DNA of 64,000 bases, taken from Zancudomyces culisetae HAW-14-8. Lineage: Eukaryota > Fungi > Kickxellomycota. Shown piece after piece: positions 3,038 through 11,355 of the stretch. The position numbers and the translations under genes were made by a program. Positions within the stretch are counted from its first letter, which is position 1, and each line of letters begins with the position of its first letter. The notes beneath the pieces are model-generated. The model was given only the letters and a program-made list of their open reading frames with translations, was not told where the DNA came from and did not search any database. The stretch is from the NCBI GenBank assembly GCA_052426225.1, contig JBNJNM010000011.1, forward strand, positions 2,294,001-2,358,000, read 5' to 3'.

Positions 3038-4170
3038 ATGCTAAGGGTAAATTATTTGAATTTTTCTCTACGGATGTTTATTAGTGATTGCTCGAAGAAA
3101 ATAGCCAGGAATAGCATCTGCTCCCAACCCAGAATTGGGAGACTGTACAATACATTCGATACAAGTGCGACCATTCTACAAAGAGCGATAAGCAGTCAAA
3201 GTACAAGCATTCTGGTCATACAAAAGCGATTTTCATCAAATGACTCTTCGATTGACAAGGAGCACAAGCAATGTTGGCTGTGCAAAGAGGCAAGCGATAG
3301 GAAATCCATTTATTGTACCAATTTGAAATGCCACGTAATACAGCCATTCGATCCCTCCTTAAACTATTTCGACGTTTTCACAAAGTAACTTTATCACTAT
3401 AATGTACTTCAAATAACCATTGTATATATCACTTTTAAATTTTATGAGCTAAACATGTTTTTGTCGTTGTTCTATTAAAAAAACTAGGTCGGATATTCTT
3501 TTTGATATTGATTTGAACAAACTGAGAAAAAAGTTTATAGAGCTGCAACAGGCAGCGCATCCCGACTCGAACGTGCTGAGTGATAAGGTATGACATATAT
3601 TTGGATATTCATCTTGGACCTTTTGCCTCTAATTCTAATGTCTTTGTGATTTTTTTATTGAGCCTTTATTTTAAAAAATAATAGAAAATACAGGAACTTT
3701 CAAGTGAGCATTCGGCATGGCTTAACAAGGCATATGTAACCTTGAAAGATCCATTATCCAGAGCTAAGTATATTGTATGTAACATTTTTACTTGTGATTT
3801 CTCTTTGGAATTTATAATCTTTATCGATTTATCAAGAAAATACAATTATAACAATAATTCAAATGGCATTTCTTAGCTCCACCTCGAGAATTTCTCAATC
3901 AAGGAGGACGAAGAGTTCCTGGATCATGACTTTTTGTTTGAAATGATGGAAATCCGCGAAAATATCGAAAGTGCAAAGTCTGTTGATGAAATGAAGCTGA
4001 TAAAAACTAAAAACGAAAGTGAAATTGGTCAGGTTATTAAAGAACTGTCTGGTACATTCAAATCAAAGGACTTTGATAAGGCCCGTTCGTTAACCATAAA
4101 GCTCCAGTATTTATATCGGCTTAATGATTCTATAGACAGCTGGAATGCCGATAAAGGAATAATAAGCTGA
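3038..4170 (+). CDS. JAC1: Mitochondrial Fe-S cluster co-chaperone HscB/HSC20 (J-domain), 4 exons
   Basis: Exons 3038-3384, 3488-3587, 3685-3774 and 3877-4170 splice in frame by GT-AG. Basic presequence, CWLC..CTNLKC, NYFDVF, HPD motif, LNKAYVTLKDPLSRAKY, FEMMEIRE and KLQY. Confidence 0.92.
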
Positions 4171-4674
4171 TTCGCACTTTTGTTTTGGTATTTGTGTTTG
4201 CTTTAGAACTGCTTTTGTTATTTACCTATTTATTTCGTAACTCTATTTATAGTGTGGTACATTAACGGGTTGATGTTTATTAACCTATTATTGGCGTAGA
4301 GCGCTGTTAATACATAGAGTGTAAAGAGGAAAAAGCATGTTGTAGACGGCTAGGAGAACAAAATGATGAGAGAATGAGATCCTTATGTTCGGCTGGCCGT
4401 ACTTGTGATGATTTTTCCATCACACTGGGTAAGCCCATCGCAAAATTAGGCGTATATTGTACTGAGAATAAAATGGGTATGACGTATTGTGTGGGTCTAC
4501 CACGGACCAATACACCATTCACTTATTTTATAAGAAGCTCATTAACGCACTCCATCGCTGTGCCGTTCCTGGCGTTTTGACGACATAATAGAAGGGAGTC
4601 ACAGGACTCTTGCTTTTTATTTTTGATAAAAACAGCTACGCAGATTTGATCACAAAACCAATTAAAACTGCAAA

Positions 4675-5090
4675 AAGATGTGGAAGTGTAGTGTCACTGG
4701 AGACCCTGAGACGTTAACAACAGGACATCGAGAGAATCCCAACATCCTGAGCCCCGCGCATGAAAACGCAGGAAAAGCGAACAAAGAGTACTATGATTGC
4801 ACCACCCAGGCTGCGGCAGTTGCCGCTATTTTGCCTGGCATTATTTATATCTCACTTCCAAACAGATCAGCAAATTATCCAACCCTCGCAAAACGCAAGG
4901 TTTGAACGCCAAGTCACGAAGCGATTACTCGCAAACACCTCCCCCAAACACTTTTTCCACCTCCCCTCGGTTTATGGCGGAACCAAAGACTTGAGGGAGG
5001 TGGAAGAAGCGCAAGACCAAAAATGTCCTCGACTTAAAAAAAAGTCGGAACATTCACGGTTTTGAATGGGGGAAATGGAAAGTACTAGGC
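4675..5090 (-). ncRNA. Putative highly structured non-coding RNA of unknown family; 5' end uncertain, may extend to ~5330
   Basis: At least 8 helices found by eye: 4681-4688/4853-4860, 4721-4749, 4806-4838, 4878-4906, 4921-4932 (GUAA tetraloop), 4936-4946/5067-5077, 4948-4968/4993-5012 and 5023-5053. Nearly all G-U pairs form only on the minus strand. GC-rich island in AT-rich intergenic DNA. Confidence 0.65.
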
Positions 5091-5344
5091 TAAATACGGT
5101 TGGTTATGGTGGTTTTTTGTCCCATTCAATTAAGAACAATACGCAAAACAACCAATAAGAGTGAGCAAAGATACCAAATTCAATAAAACTCGGGTTTTGA
5201 CAGTTTGAAAGATAAGTTATGAGTTATGGGGAAAGTACGTATAAGTAACTAGCGCCAATGGGAAGCGGTAAGTTTGGAAAAAATCAAAGAAAATCGCGAG
5301 TATTTCAAACCATAATTTGTTCGAGTTTTTTGTCTTGTGAGTAT

Positions 5345-5400
5345 ATGAAGTAAAAGAGAGAGAAGAGAGAAGAGAGAAAAGATAGAGGAGGGGGGCAAAG
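5345..5400 (-). promoter_or_regulatory. CT-rich pyrimidine tract on the minus strand, possible core promoter/TSS region of the putative ncRNA
   Basis: Plus strand AAAAGAGAGAGAAGAGAGAAGAGAGAAAAGATAGAGGAGGGGGG. CT-rich tracts commonly precede fungal Pol II start sites. The link to the ncRNA is inference. Confidence 0.3.
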
Positions 5401-7805
5401 TAGAGGTGTACATTTGGAAGTAAGACACTCCGCTTATTCTGGCTGCTGTGGCCCAGCGAGGCATATCCAGTACTTTGGAAAGTCACTGGCGGCCTGTTGG
5501 GTACACGAGACCTGAAACAGGTAGTTTTCAAATTCCCTTTGTCTTCATACCAAACGAGTGCAGAGTCAATGGACCTGAAATGAGCCCAGCTCACAATTTT
5601 GTGCAAGAAAATTTAAATTTGGATACAATAGTGTATAAACCTTGTCATACCTAACCATTACGAAGTATGCTATAATGCAAGCAATGGGCTGTTCATACAA
5701 AGAATGAAAAAAACTAAAATGGCAGGTATACCCAAGTCTTTGTAGTGTATTTTAGTTAGTGCTTTGTTTTACTTTGCTTTGATTCGCTTTTTTGGAGCGA
5801 CTTTGTAATTCATAATGTAGCCTCGAATTGCATCTGAATTTATAATATATCAAGCTTTTGAGCATACTGTAACACCCCCTATAATCGCCTGTAATCGGAT
5901 ACAACTCATTCTATATATATCGAAAAAGCTGTTAACGTAACTAGGCTTTAGAGGGCGAGTAATAGCTGTTTACAAACTAGCCCCTTAATTCCATCTTTGC
6001 TTTTTAGCAAATATTCGGCGTTTTTTTTCTTTTCCGCCGCCTAAAATATTGAAATGTAATGAGGAGGAGAGGTAGTGTATTTTTGGTCAAAAATTAGGTT
6101 ATTCTCTGATTTCAACCATTAAAGTCGACTACGTGAAAGCTGAATGGATTGATATTATTTCCCTCCCCCCAAAATAAGCTGCAAAGCAAACTAGGAAATT
6201 CTGCTCTTGGGGCAAAATCAGTCAAATTTTAGAGGCCAATCACTATCGGGTGCCTTGAACTAATATGACGCGCAACAGGAAAATAAACCATAAACAATGT
6301 TTGTTTTTGTCTTGATAATCATCGACATTTTAGCGTGACCTGATTGAGCAAAGTATTTATCCCAAAAAAAGTGCACATAAATTTGTAATCAAAGTTAAAG
6401 CAACGTTTTTATTGGTATGCATTTGTAAACAACATAGATCAATTGGCTGTCAACAGGAGTATTAGAAAATAGGTGAAACAGTACAATCCAGCTCGAGGTC
6501 TGATTGAGATTTGTACAGGATTTCTTTTTCTAATTTCGATTGAATTAATTGTTTTATTTGATTTGAACTGGCAAACAGAAATGCTTGAATTAATCCCACT
6601 TTCCGTTTCGCTAATGTTTGGATTTAATGTAAACTTTGGCAAAAATAATTACAAAAACCGGAGGTTAGTATAATTAGCAATCTTGAGTTATTCGTGTAAA
6701 TTTGAATTTGGATGGTGATTTTTTACTTTTTTCGTTTTTATCACCATTTTTTTTTCTTTTAAAATTTATAAACATACACATTAGCAAATGAAGTCTGTTT
6801 ATTGCCAGTTAAACTGATTAAATACTTTTTTTTTCGCCATCTACAAAACCCCTCTACCAAAACCTGTTGGTGTTTATTGCGAAAAAATAGGTGATAAAGA
6901 AGCTTCAGATGTAGAGGCTCGTTTTGTATAGGTTGTGGTTAACCTTTCTAAAAAAACATCGTGCAGAAAGAAAGAAAAAAAAAACATCGTTTCTGTTATA
7001 CAGTTTCACTGAGTTTAGTTTTAGTCAAGTAACTCAGCAATAGTTATTTTTTCCGTTAACACTGAATGTTTGATAAGCGTAAAGGGGGGAAAAATGAATA
7101 ATTCCATCCACACTTTTGATAATCTCTAAATGCTTAATTACATGCCATTGAATTTCGAAACGAAGAGTAAAACAGTCAATTCTGACAAAACGGATGAATC
7201 ATACTTGGAACTAAATCAAATATCTCTAATCAAGTTTATGCACTAGTGGATAGGATTCTTAAATAATCATAGACCATTAAATATACTGTTTTTATCATTT
7301 ACTGTTCCATAGAGAGGACATTGAATACGCTAACAAACAAATACCTAGACCCCAAACGACGCAGATTTACAGATAGAAAGAAAAAAAATCGAAATAAATT
7401 GTAAGTTTTTTGTTTTTCTTTTTGCTGATATACTTTTAAAAGTGAAAGCGAGTGAGGGGTGATCGAGTAGGAATGGAATGATACGAAACAGGAATGAAGT
7501 GGCTGGCAATAGATTTGTCATTTTCCGCTTTTCGAATATGATTCGAGCCTTATAAACATTTTTTAAGCATAAGGCCCTAATTGAATGATATTTTGGACAC
7601 AAACGACCTATAATTAAACGATAGTATCTTTCATTCCTTTTACTTTATCTCCCCCCAGTGTATATCTCGTACCTATTGAGAAAATAATATTTACAATAAT
7701 TAATTTATACAGTATTACAATAGATACCGGTTCCGGCAACCAAGCAGGGATCACCCTAAATAAAAATAGTTAGATAATAAAAACTTTGAATATAATTAAT
7801 ATAAA

Positions 7806-9308
7806 ATGCCAATCGTGTACGATAGCAATGGAAAAATATGTACGTATTATAATGAACATGATTTATCTGTATTTGTAGTTATGTACTAGCTTTTATAGTT
7901 TGACTCTTTTTATTAATATCAAACACATCAATTACATTGAATAGCGTGCGTGTTGGATCAGTATTGTCTTCCAATATCTGGAGGCACATATTTTGTCGGA
8001 TCACAATTAATAGTAGTATGGAATAACAAGTGGCCGCTTTATGTAGTTACAGGAAATGTGGATATATATATATTTGATCAATTCAATACACGAGATCCTG
8101 TAGCTAGATATCTCAGTGTGGAAAATGGAGATGGAACCTATGGAATCACCCTTGAAAACTCACTTTTCAAATACTCAAACACCACTGACTCAACTTTGGA
8201 GGATAAAAGAACGTTTGTGCTAGAAATTGTGCCTAATGGATCAACGCCATCGTCCCCTTCTGGCCCTGTGTTTAACGTAATTCGACCGTCTTTTACTTCA
8301 ACAAGCACACTTTCGAAAACGACTTCTTCTTCTTCTTCCTCCAGCAAAACCACCAGTACCGGGACGCGGACTTTTAGTAGTACAATGTCAATTTCGAGTA
8401 CTAGTGATGCTGAAAGCACTGAGAGTAGCTCTACCACAATCCCCATCGGACCAGGATCGAAATCCTTGAGTACAGCCGCGATTGTAGCCATTGCTCTTGG
8501 ATCGGTCTTGTTTTTACTGCTTATTCTACTACTTTTACTCTTTATGCGCAGAAGAAGGAAAAGAGAACGGATGGCAGAAAAACAAGTCAGTAATGACGAT
8601 GGTGTATTCGATGAATATGACGCACTTGAAGATTCTAATGCCGATATGGACGGCAGCGCCATAACCGCAGGCCTATCAGGCAAAATTGTCACCGACACCA
8701 AAAATGAAGACTTTTCCACGTTTGGCGGCAGTCCTCCCTTCCAAGATCCCAAGGCAGTAGCAGGTGTCTATGGCGACTACGAGCTTCCATCCATAATGAG
8801 CTCCCCGATGGTATTTGCAGGCCCTCAAAGATCTACAAGAACCAATTCCCAGGGCTCAAATAAATCCAATTTTGCTGGAGGTGGGCCAACTAAAATGGGC
8901 AGCCCCGGTTCTGGATTTGTATTAGATGGACCAAACCATTCTACCTCTTTTACTGAACTTGATGCTAGGATTGTTGGAAAAGGATTCCGTGATGCTCTGG
9001 ACAAAGCTCCCGAAAACGATCTAATTAAATCAGACGAGGAAGACGGACAAGGTGGCGATAATTCTACACCTGAACACGGAAACTGGCGGGAAACTATTGC
9101 CCATGATAGAATGCAGCGTGCCCTAGAGCAAGACAAGTCGATCAAAGTAGTGGATCTGCATCATAAAGCCACTCCGTTTTCCACCGCCGGTCTTCAGTCC
9201 ACAAAGTTTTCTGTGAAATCTGATAAACCCTTGTCCACAACGTCCTTAAGTTCCCCCGACCCCGATGCCCCGTCAGACAGTACTGATAAGACCGAACCCG
9301 ATACATAG
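7806..9308 (+). CDS. Single-pass membrane protein: beta-rich ectodomain, Ser/Thr-rich stalk, TM helix, long cytoplasmic tail (Mid2/Wsc-like architecture)
   Basis: Exon 1 7806-7839 (MPIVYDSNGKI), GTACGT..TAG intron 7840-7944, exon 2 7945-9308 in frame with ORF 7950. S/T run, then TM AAIVAIALGSVLFLLLILLLLLF followed by RRRRKR. Confidence 0.8.
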
Positions 9309-10260
9309 TAGATCGGCCTTGCCATCTCTCTGCAACCTGTTTGTTAGATTTTCTTTTATATTCTGCATTTGTATTTTGAGTGTTACTTTTCTTTTATGAT
9401 CTAATGCTATATAGCCTCGTTTTGTTTTGGCGAACTGCATTGCCAGCAAGTAATAATGATAAATGTTTGTATTTACGCAGACTGGCATTGATAGACCTGG
9501 GATGGTAAAAAAAGCAACACTGGGTGGCACACTGACACCAAAACTGTGTCAGTTTGGGACACTCCATACTGTCCAAGCAAGTATATTGATGTGGAAACAG
9601 TATTTTTTCTGCTTCATGTTCGCTCTAAAACTTGTATGTCAACGCTACATTCACCTTTTCCCTTCTTACCATCGAATCATACAGACACATTTGAGTTTGC
9701 TGCGAGTATAAAAAGTTAGCTAAATGACAAGAATCATTTTACTTTACCTCGTTTTCACGTGCCAGTCTTTGTAGTATTTGTTTTATTCCTATTTAATAGA
9801 TGAACATGAAATTAAAATAGAAACAAGTAAAGCTATCAATTTCACACTTAATTACGAAACAGAAAATCAAACTCAATTCATCCTAGAAAAATGGGGGGGG
9901 AAGGAATGTAGACAGCCTGAAAGCGCTGCCTATCCCCGTGTTTATCTCTGCATGTGTATCTGTGCTTTTGCATTCCTTTTTTTTTTTACTCGAATTAGAA
10001 AAAGAACGGTTTCACATTTTCCAGGTTTTTTATTTTTATTTTACTATGTTTTTTTAAATTCTAAACGTGTTGGCTGGAGTATGTATTATAAAAACCCCTC
10101 TTCCCCGTTTACTAGTTCGTTTTATCAACACTTATCTCTTTTTAAAGTTTTAAATACATAGTAAACAACTTTTAATATATACTCGCAGACGTATATATAT
10201 GCTTGATATTCTTTTATAAATTACTTTTATACAACTGTCTGTTTGACTTTGAACGCAAAA

Positions 10261-11355
10261 ATGTCGATGAAAGCTATTTATGTCGAGAAACTGCTAACCC
10301 ACCCGGACCAAATGGTGGTTAAACGCATTCCGATCCCAGAACCACAGGCCGGAGAAATACTCGTTAAAATCGAAGCTGCTGGTGCCAACTTTTTTGATAT
10401 CCTCATAGTAAGTCACCCAACTCCCCTGCTCTATTGTTACATGCACAGTACCAATTTAGAATAATAAAATACAAATAACATAACACGTAAATAGATACAG
10501 GGAAAATATCAAGTAAAGCCAAAACTTCCGTTCATTCCAGGCAGTGAGTTTGCCGGAACTGTGGTCAGGTCAAATGATCCAAAATCTAGCTTTAAGCCTG
10601 GTGATCGAGTATTTGGAAGCACTACCACCGGAGCATATGCTGAATACACTAGCATAGCGAGCGACAGACTGTTTTTGATACCAAAAAACCTTAACTTTGA
10701 GGAAGCATGTGGAATTTATGTCACACTTCCCACCAGCTATGCTGCATTGAAGGTCCGCGCAGACATAAAGGCCGGGGATGTAGTTTTGGTTCTTGCTGCA
10801 GCCGGAGGAGTTGGAATTGCGGCAGTACAAATAGCAAAGGCCTTTGGTGCCACTGTTATCAGTGCAGTGGGCTCTGAAGAAAAGTTTGACATTTGCAGAA
10901 AGGCCGGCTCTGATTATGTAATAAACTACAGTAACAAGAACTGGACCCAAGAGGTTCTCTCGATTACAAAAGGAAAGGGTGCAGATATTATCTATGACCC
11001 AGTCGGAAGAATAGGGGAATCACTCAAATGTATCGCCTGGAACGGTCGAGCATTGGTTATAGGCTATGCAGGAGGTGCTATTGAAAACTTGATGACAAAT
11101 CGCGTGCTTCTAAAAAACGTCAGCGTTGTTGGCGTGCACTGGGGAGCATACTACCTTAACGAAAAAGAAACAGTTCCAAAGGTTTGGGAGGGTATCTTTG
11201 ATCTAATTTCCAAAGGTCTGCTGAAACCGATAGTCTACCAACCTGTATTCAACTCCCTTGAACAGACAAATGAGGCACTGAATACGATTGCTTCCAGAAA
11301 GACATTTGGAAAAGTTGTTGTAAAACCTGGTAACTCTACCGAAAGCAAGCTATAG
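10261..11355 (+). CDS. Zeta-crystallin-like NADPH:quinone oxidoreductase (MDR family), 2 exons
   Basis: Exon 1 10261-10407, GTAAGT..TAG intron, exon 2 10495-11355. Motifs GANFFDIL-IQGKYQVKP-FIPGSEFAG, AAAGGVG and GKVVV. Confidence 0.92.

Follow-up and report, generated by a model that had tools for sequence, protein, structure and literature searches.

A probable snRNA-type gene behind a shared promoter element in the insect-gut fungus Zancudomyces culisetae

Introduction

What kind of gene, if any, occupies the GC-rich island that follows HSC20 in the genome of Zancudomyces culisetae, an insect-gut fungus of the Harpellales? The island lies in the window, by which we mean the whole 64,000-nucleotide stretch of DNA that was analyzed, on contig C11 of a eukaryotic assembly of 27.1 Mb in 25 contigs; all coordinates below are those of the window unless another contig is named. 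An earlier note had proposed that the island encodes an unannotated, highly structured non-coding RNA on the minus strand, made by RNA polymerase II (Pol II) and possibly a diverged telomerase RNA. Non-coding RNAs of the Zoopagomycota are barely described, and our literature search returned no Zoopagomycota ncRNA paper for Zancudomyces and no paper pairing telomerase RNA with early-diverging fungi.

Results

Setting and copy number of the locus

On one side of the RNA locus is the last exon of HSC20 (3877-4170, plus strand; PF07743, E 2.8e-16, from an exon-by-exon search), with which the locus is convergent; on the other is a membrane-protein ORF at 7950. A quinone oxidoreductase encoded nearby has 99% identity to the protein of Z. 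culisetae. The island described in the gap 3' of HSC20 is indeed GC-rich, with a GC content of up to 0.50 at 4801-5000 against about 0.35 in the surroundings. The possibility that it is a multicopy MITE or other transposon remnant was rejected: the element has one match in the whole 27.1-Mb genome, and terminal inverted repeats are absent. Rfam, which the earlier note had proposed to consult, yielded no family match for the minus-strand element, with nothing real at the RNA locus either at E ≤ 10 over 3500-6500 or at the gathering score over the whole window, and the plus-strand ORFs over the locus have no Pfam domain above the cut-off. Just 3' of HSC20, at 4363-4466 on the plus strand, there is a C/D-box-like arrangement (C-like at 4363, a second UGAUGA at 4405, CUGA at 4462) for which no convincing target was found and whose fold is not significant.

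Fold and strand bias

Read on the minus strand, 4660-5100 folds at -167.5 kcal/mol (z -7.32), and on the plus strand at -135.6 kcal/mol (z -4.43); shuffled sequence was beaten 100 times out of 100 on each. Among confident pairs (p > 0.8), G-U pairs make up 14 of 99 on the minus strand versus 4 of 102 on the plus strand, which bears out the claimed wobble asymmetry and is what one expects if the minus-strand RNA is the folding molecule. Every helix that had been named is present in the minus-strand fold, with mean pair probabilities of 0.84-1.0. From 5' to 3', the fold contains a three-way junction (4936-5077; main helices p 0.84-0.99) closed by the 11-bp helix 5077-5067/4946-4936 and bearing two long arms (5060-5016 and 5012-4948); a 4-bp hairpin with a GNRA loop, GCGA-GUAA-UCGC, at 4932-4921 (p 0.92); a hairpin with an internal loop at 4907-4877 (p 0.93-0.99), previously placed at 4878-4906; a single-stranded hinge at 4876-4861, which holds a minimal Sm-like AAUUUG at 4876-4871; and a 3' multibranch domain (4681-4860, minus strand; p 0.95-1.0) closed by GGAAGUG/CACUUCC within 4860-4853/4688-4681. 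Inside this domain, the second multibranch of the earlier description, are three stable hairpins at 4838-4806, 4772-4753, and 4749-4721, the last formed by the 13-bp helix with four G-U pairs (4749-4737/4733-4721). The internal "Sm-like" AUUUUUGG at 5024-5017 is not supported as a site, having seven of its eight positions base-paired and being buried in a helix, and a candidate 3' Sm site with hairpin at 4680-4640 is no more stably folded than its shuffles (z -0.37).

Promoter element and extent of the transcription unit

We first spotted the sequence CCCCATAAC about 70-78 nt upstream of U1 and U2, and then at 5231-5223 on the minus strand, where it is the core of a PSE-like, snRNA-type promoter element, TTCCCCATAACT (5222-5233, minus strand). 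Scanning the DNA 3' of CCCCATAAC sites recovered U4, U5, U6, and tRNA-Sec; in this genome the element thus stands 64-81 nt upstream of six known genes (U1, U2, U4, U5, U6, and tRNA-Sec), while the U3 gene has a variant of it. In animals, SNAPc serves the U1/U2/U4/U5/U6/tRNA-Sec gene set. Judged by its placement in the sequence, CCCCATAAC behaves as an snRNA promoter element. The 27-Mb genome holds 60 exact copies, most of which are background; at 60 copies per 54 Mb, both strands counted, any particular 100 nt of upstream sequence would contain one with a probability of roughly 1e-4. Seven background copies belong to two small repeat families (L096, L113, and L116; L067, L100, L104, and L114) and not to snRNA genes.

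Because the element-to-start spacing of the six genes is 64-81 nt, the predicted start zone is 5150-5167 on the minus strand (candidate A at 5162 or 5156), which gives a predicted RNA of about 480 nt (4676-5160, minus strand). The unit of more than 400 nt originally drawn at 4675-5090 therefore stands as a minus-strand folded unit, but it probably extends 5' to about 5150-5167. As an snRNA-type transcription unit, the locus has the element common to U1/U2/U4/U5/U6 on the matching strand and at a matching distance, its 5' end being placed from the element itself. The fold of 4676-5156 (minus strand) has an energy of -178.6 kcal/mol (z -5.94), reached by 0 of 100 shuffles. Its strong part begins about 150 nt 3' of the promoter element; a weak 5' hairpin (5100-5155, minus strand; pair probabilities 0.4-0.5) bridges the distance and is the only structure in the first ~80 nt of the predicted RNA (z -1.47 alone). 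The 5' part also has an alternative 14-nt pairing, 5129-5116/5075-5062.

A run of eight U residues at 5036-5043 (minus strand) lies mostly in a hairpin loop. Since U6 and tRNA-Sec end in T7-T8 in this genome, Pol III would halt at the internal U8 but probably not at the U5 run of the predicted 3' end (4672-4676, minus strand); the full-length RNA would therefore be a Pol II product, and the Pol II origin put forward by the earlier note is made probable by the internal U8. The predicted terminus consists of a 7-bp stem, an ACA triplet (4679-4681, minus strand), 3 nt, and a U run. The ACA, placed 3 nt before the 3' end predicted from sequence, is ACA-box-like; its first A can pair with U4860 (unpaired p 0.15) as the last base of an 8-bp stem, and the ACA-box reading requires the 7-bp stem. 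The ending had been written as ACA plus 3 nt, then U5: both ACA and U5 are present, but the third nucleotide is already the first U of the U5 run.

Known RNA families

U1, U2, U4, U5, U6, U3, RNase P, and RNase MRP RNAs were all located elsewhere in the genome, and Rfam finds nothing at the locus, in agreement with the claim that the RNA is none of U1-U6, U3, or RNase P/MRP. The five spliceosomal RNAs were rejected for lack of a covariance-model match and of splice-site or U6 pairing motifs, and U3, RNase P, RNase MRP, SRP, and C/D snoRNA for lack of an Rfam model match and of C/D boxes. Similarity of the predicted RNA to U1/U2/U4/U5/U6, sense and antisense, is at shuffle level. Two resemblances that are striking by eye were rejected as well: a U4-like pairing with U6 scored -35.9 versus a null of -33.9 ± 3.2, and a U2-like similarity was at shuffle level. 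Antisense matches of the predicted RNA to rRNA (two 10-mers to 18S, one to LSU) are attributable to chance, with p of 0.31 and 0.82. Neither SRP RNA (searched with RF01502) nor U17 (RF00045) was found in the genome, and the missing SRP RNA or U17 may be among the orphan RNAs described below.

Conservation and search for counterparts

The locus is also present in a second assembly, GCA_001969505.1, where 5 of 486 nt differ, all by C/U exchange, at about the rate seen in the flanking DNA (overall identity 99.2%). There the promoter element is identical, and the pocket and ACA are unchanged; in the helices a G-C pair turns into G-U and a U-A pair into C-A, and the energy change is no smaller than that of random transitions. 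These five substitutions carry no sign of purifying selection. The synteny-guided search in relatives that had been suggested used the linkage of quinone oxidoreductase (QOR) and ribonucleotide reductase (RNR), which three Smittium species and Furculomyces retain; no counterpart turned up in the Smittium and Furculomyces flanks by blastn, nhmmer, or energy scanning. No Harpellales HSC20 was among the matches listed in protein searches, and metagenome pattern scans for the RNA were blank. The linkage of the RNR large subunit with QOR is itself kept across Harpellales (L034 3973-6489; window 10243-11355; L048, L049, L052, and L121): the pair is adjacent in Smittium and Furculomyces, and about 17 kb apart and reordered in Z. 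culisetae.

Other genes behind the same element

On contig C11 near 2501100-2500770 (minus strand), a structured RNA of about 340 nt (L084; z -4 to -6) lies behind CCCCATAAC and ends in a 7-8-bp stem, ACA, and 3 nt (UUU); it has no Rfam match, and a possible LSU pocket target, U3047 in our own numbering, is not significant in the strict scan. A strongly folded RNA of about 470 nt (L098, contig C13 from 752649, plus strand; z -8.2), also behind the element, has 5' and 3' ends that can pair and no Rfam match. A near-identical gene pair, L068 (C6:1986118, plus strand) and L094 (C12:879060, minus strand), has a U1-like 5' end (ACCUUACC), an AUUGCAC motif, and no Rfam match; these are possible U1 variants. 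Further unassigned candidates behind the element are L106 (C15:1445826, minus strand), in which a U12-like 5' stretch and a U5-loop-like stretch were seen by eye only, and L041 (C21:874236, plus strand). The tRNA-Sec gene behind the element is at C12:2375953 (plus strand; L097; 57.9 bits, over the cut-off). RNase P RNA is matched at C19:137295-138513 (minus strand; L118, duplicated on C21) by two pieces about 1 kb apart, a 5' P4 strand and a 3' conserved region, and a promoter-like CCCCATAG stands in the gap; the gene may be split or interrupted by an intron, or its RNA may be very long.

Discussion

The bias of the fold, the one genome match, and the upstream snRNA promoter element support the reading of this locus as a minus-strand, single-copy ncRNA. 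It is very probably a real, unannotated snRNA-type gene, whose transcription and function we infer, and the predicted RNA is probably a small nuclear or nucleolar RNA outside the catalogued families.

Our best guess as to its kind, offered tentatively, is an expanded orphan H/ACA-type scaffold RNA that is protected by H/ACA proteins and works in the manner of snR30. A SNAPc-type factor would, with high probability, bind the element and start transcription near 5150-5167; Pol II would then probably read through the internal U8 to yield a capped RNA of about 480 nt; and, in what is the weakest step, the 3' end may be trimmed to 3 nt past the ACA that adjoins the 7-bp terminal stem, and the H/ACA core proteins (Cbf5, Nop10, Nhp2, and Gar1) would sit there, protecting it. 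With no significant modification target for its 3' internal loop, the RNA would serve as a structural scaffold or folding chaperone, as large orphan H/ACA RNAs do on the snR30 model, and not as a pseudouridylation guide. The fold with its minus-strand bias, the promoter element common to six known genes, and the predicted stem-ACA-3 nt ending, which L084 behind the same element reproduces, all speak for this reading, and both size and multi-hairpin build fall within the range of yeast snR30 (325-606 nt; PMC7601244). Canonical snR30/U17 was not located in the genome, in searches too weak to amount to absence, which leaves a slot open for an orphan RNA; SRP RNA and telomerase RNA were likewise not located.

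Against the H/ACA-type reading, the 3' domain is multibranched and not a simple hairpin with a pocket, and an ACA would follow the stem by chance about once in 50. The chance-level antisense matches to rRNA and the five substitutions with no sign of purifying selection count against it as well. The H box is required for snR30 accumulation (PMC7601244); there is no ANANNA in the hinge (4876-4861) before the 3' domain, and the other ANANNA occurrences are inside loops or helices. What defines snR30/U17 is a 3' pocket with m1 and m2 at its base (PMC7601244). Here m1, AUAUUCCUA (UAUUCC), is absent from the predicted RNA and m2, AAACCAU, from its 3' domain, AAACCA occurring in the 5' hairpin only; the 18S partners rm1 and rm2 are conserved in Z. 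culisetae. A genome search for the m1/m2 pattern gave 16 matches versus 13 in the control, and none of the five examined was convincing. We assign the predicted RNA neither to snR30/U17 nor formally to the H/ACA class.

The main rival is an Sm-class snRNA, that is, a highly diverged or lineage-specific spliceosomal-type RNA with expanded domains, a TMG cap, and an Sm ring on the hinge AAUUUG (4876-4871). We think it unlikely, if a serious contender: the promoter element is that of U1, U2, U4, and U5, the hinge motif is unpaired and set between structured domains, U4 in this genome has a degenerate Sm site, and variant snRNA-like genes (L068/L094 and L106) lie behind the same element, but the hinge holds three U only, and the U1 5' end, the U2 branch-pairing GUAGUA, U5 loop 1, and ACAGAGA are all absent from the transcript, whose similarity to U1/U2/U4/U5/U6 and U4-like U6 pairing stay at shuffle level. 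Checked against the form RAU(3-6)G, single-stranded between stems, 5024-5017 is paired and the minimal AAUUUG at 4876-4871 unpaired. The genome-wide snRNA search covered U1, U2, U4, U5, and U6. It is improbable that the RNA is an expanded H/ACA scaRNA directing pseudouridylation at U42 of U2, as snR81/SCARNA4 do. Between 4695-4686 and U2 32-41, 9 of 10 positions pair, with U42 about 14 nt from the ACA, and in a relaxed pocket scan this was the top match among all rRNA and snRNA, with canonical spacing, at a known modification site (PMC6049503, PMC5733568); yet 13 of 150 pocket shuffles equal it against the snRNAs (p about 0.09), the pairing invades the lower stem and leaves the top matches once that stem is kept intact, and under the strict scan the best target is equaled or outdone in 59 of 60 shuffles. 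It also tells against this reading that the pairing has a mismatch three bases away from its target, that the 5' guide is weak, and that an upper stem is absent. There is only a slim chance that Pol III makes a short RNA here, stopping at the U8 after about 120 nt, with the 3' fold then belonging to read-through or a separate transcript: the element is also that of U6 and tRNA-Sec, both of which end in T7-T8, and the 5' part has its alternative internal pairing, but the U8 forms the loop of an arm (p 0.99) that has its partner strands downstream, and a clear TATA box of the U6 kind is absent.

It is very unlikely that the locus is no RNA gene at all and reflects chance or DNA-level inverted repeats, a transposon remnant, or a short coding exon. 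The plus strand folds too (z -4.4), there is no conservation signal between the two assemblies, and four of the five differences fall, on our reading of the alignment, at third positions of the plus-strand ORF 4760-5065; set against this are the single copy, the lack of terminal repeats, the G-U bias to the minus strand, and a promoter element on the right strand, while the ORF has no Pfam match over the cut-off and loses its stop in GCA_001969505.1, where it is not called as a gene. The telomerase reading of the earlier note, in the form of a telomerase RNA with an H/ACA-type 3' end, is unsupported, and we regard it as highly unlikely. Such an RNA would be in keeping with the size and single copy, the probable origin from Pol II, the ACA end, the three-way junction, and the 4-bp hairpin, but chromosome ends in the assembly are (TTAGGG)n, templates span a whole repeat or more together with an alignment region (PMC8480181), and in 4600-5400 (minus strand) template-like matches reach 5 nt at most, so the suggestion fails on the defining feature. 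An ACCA-rich stretch at 5115-5100 would specify TTATGG, not TTAGGG, and the 4-bp hairpin has a GNRA loop in place of a P6.1 loop. More improbable still is a 7SK-like regulator. 7SK is marked by a 5'-terminal closing stem, paired GAUC motifs, a 3' hairpin, and Pol III compatibility. The 7-bp stem GGAAGUG/CACUUCC, which resembles the closing stem of arthropod 7SK, the GAUC at 4868, and the snRNA-type promoter point that way, but the stem is internal and not at the 5' end, the GAUC is the only one within the RNA, no 3' hairpin follows the stem, the internal U8 clashes with Pol III, and there is no Rfam 7SK match.

More broadly, the RNA could belong to an undescribed class of snRNA-promoter-driven RNP RNAs in early-diverging fungi, of a new Sm or ACA type or filling the essential snR30/U17 role without m1/m2, and be one of several orphans behind the same element in Z. 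culisetae, a proposal we hold to be speculative and unlikely as a whole. The nine letters of CCCCATAAC offer a direct way to list snRNA-type genes in Z. culisetae, recovering U1, U2, U4, U5, U6, tRNA-Sec, and about five structured orphans, the RNA of this locus among them. Through the element, a handful of orphan RNAs becomes accessible to testing, in a lineage whose RNAs of this kind are undescribed and in a fungus that can be cultured. Promoter-first logic of this kind found telomerase RNAs in plants and Hymenoptera (PMC8287931, PMC9841428).

Comparison with known systems

Animal and fungal telomerase RNAs resemble the predicted RNA in size and single copy, and those of animals in an ACA-like 3' end, but it has neither a TTAGGG template nor a P6.1 loop. 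SCARNA2 and SCARNA17, independently transcribed scaRNAs of about 420 nt, and the U2 Ψ42 guides (snR81, SCARNA4) have in common with it size, presumed Pol II origin, and weak complementarity to the U2 branch region; unlike them, it lacks C/D boxes, and its pocket geometry is non-canonical and not significant. From snR30/U17 it differs in that m1/m2 are absent from the 3' loop and the H box from the hinge, the 3' domain is branched, and neither RF00045 nor the full Rfam scan gives a match; it is like these large orphan H/ACA RNAs in size, in its several hairpins, in the predicted stem-ACA-3 nt ending, and in lacking a significant modification target. The PSE/SNAPc-driven snRNA genes (U1, U2, U4, U5, U6, and tRNA-Sec) have functional motifs that the RNA of this locus lacks, and all five major snRNAs are located elsewhere in the genome; with these genes the locus shares the same element, a compatible spacing, and a transcription unit of its own, and its predicted 3' layout of a 7-bp stem, ACA, and 3 nt is that of H/ACA RNAs.
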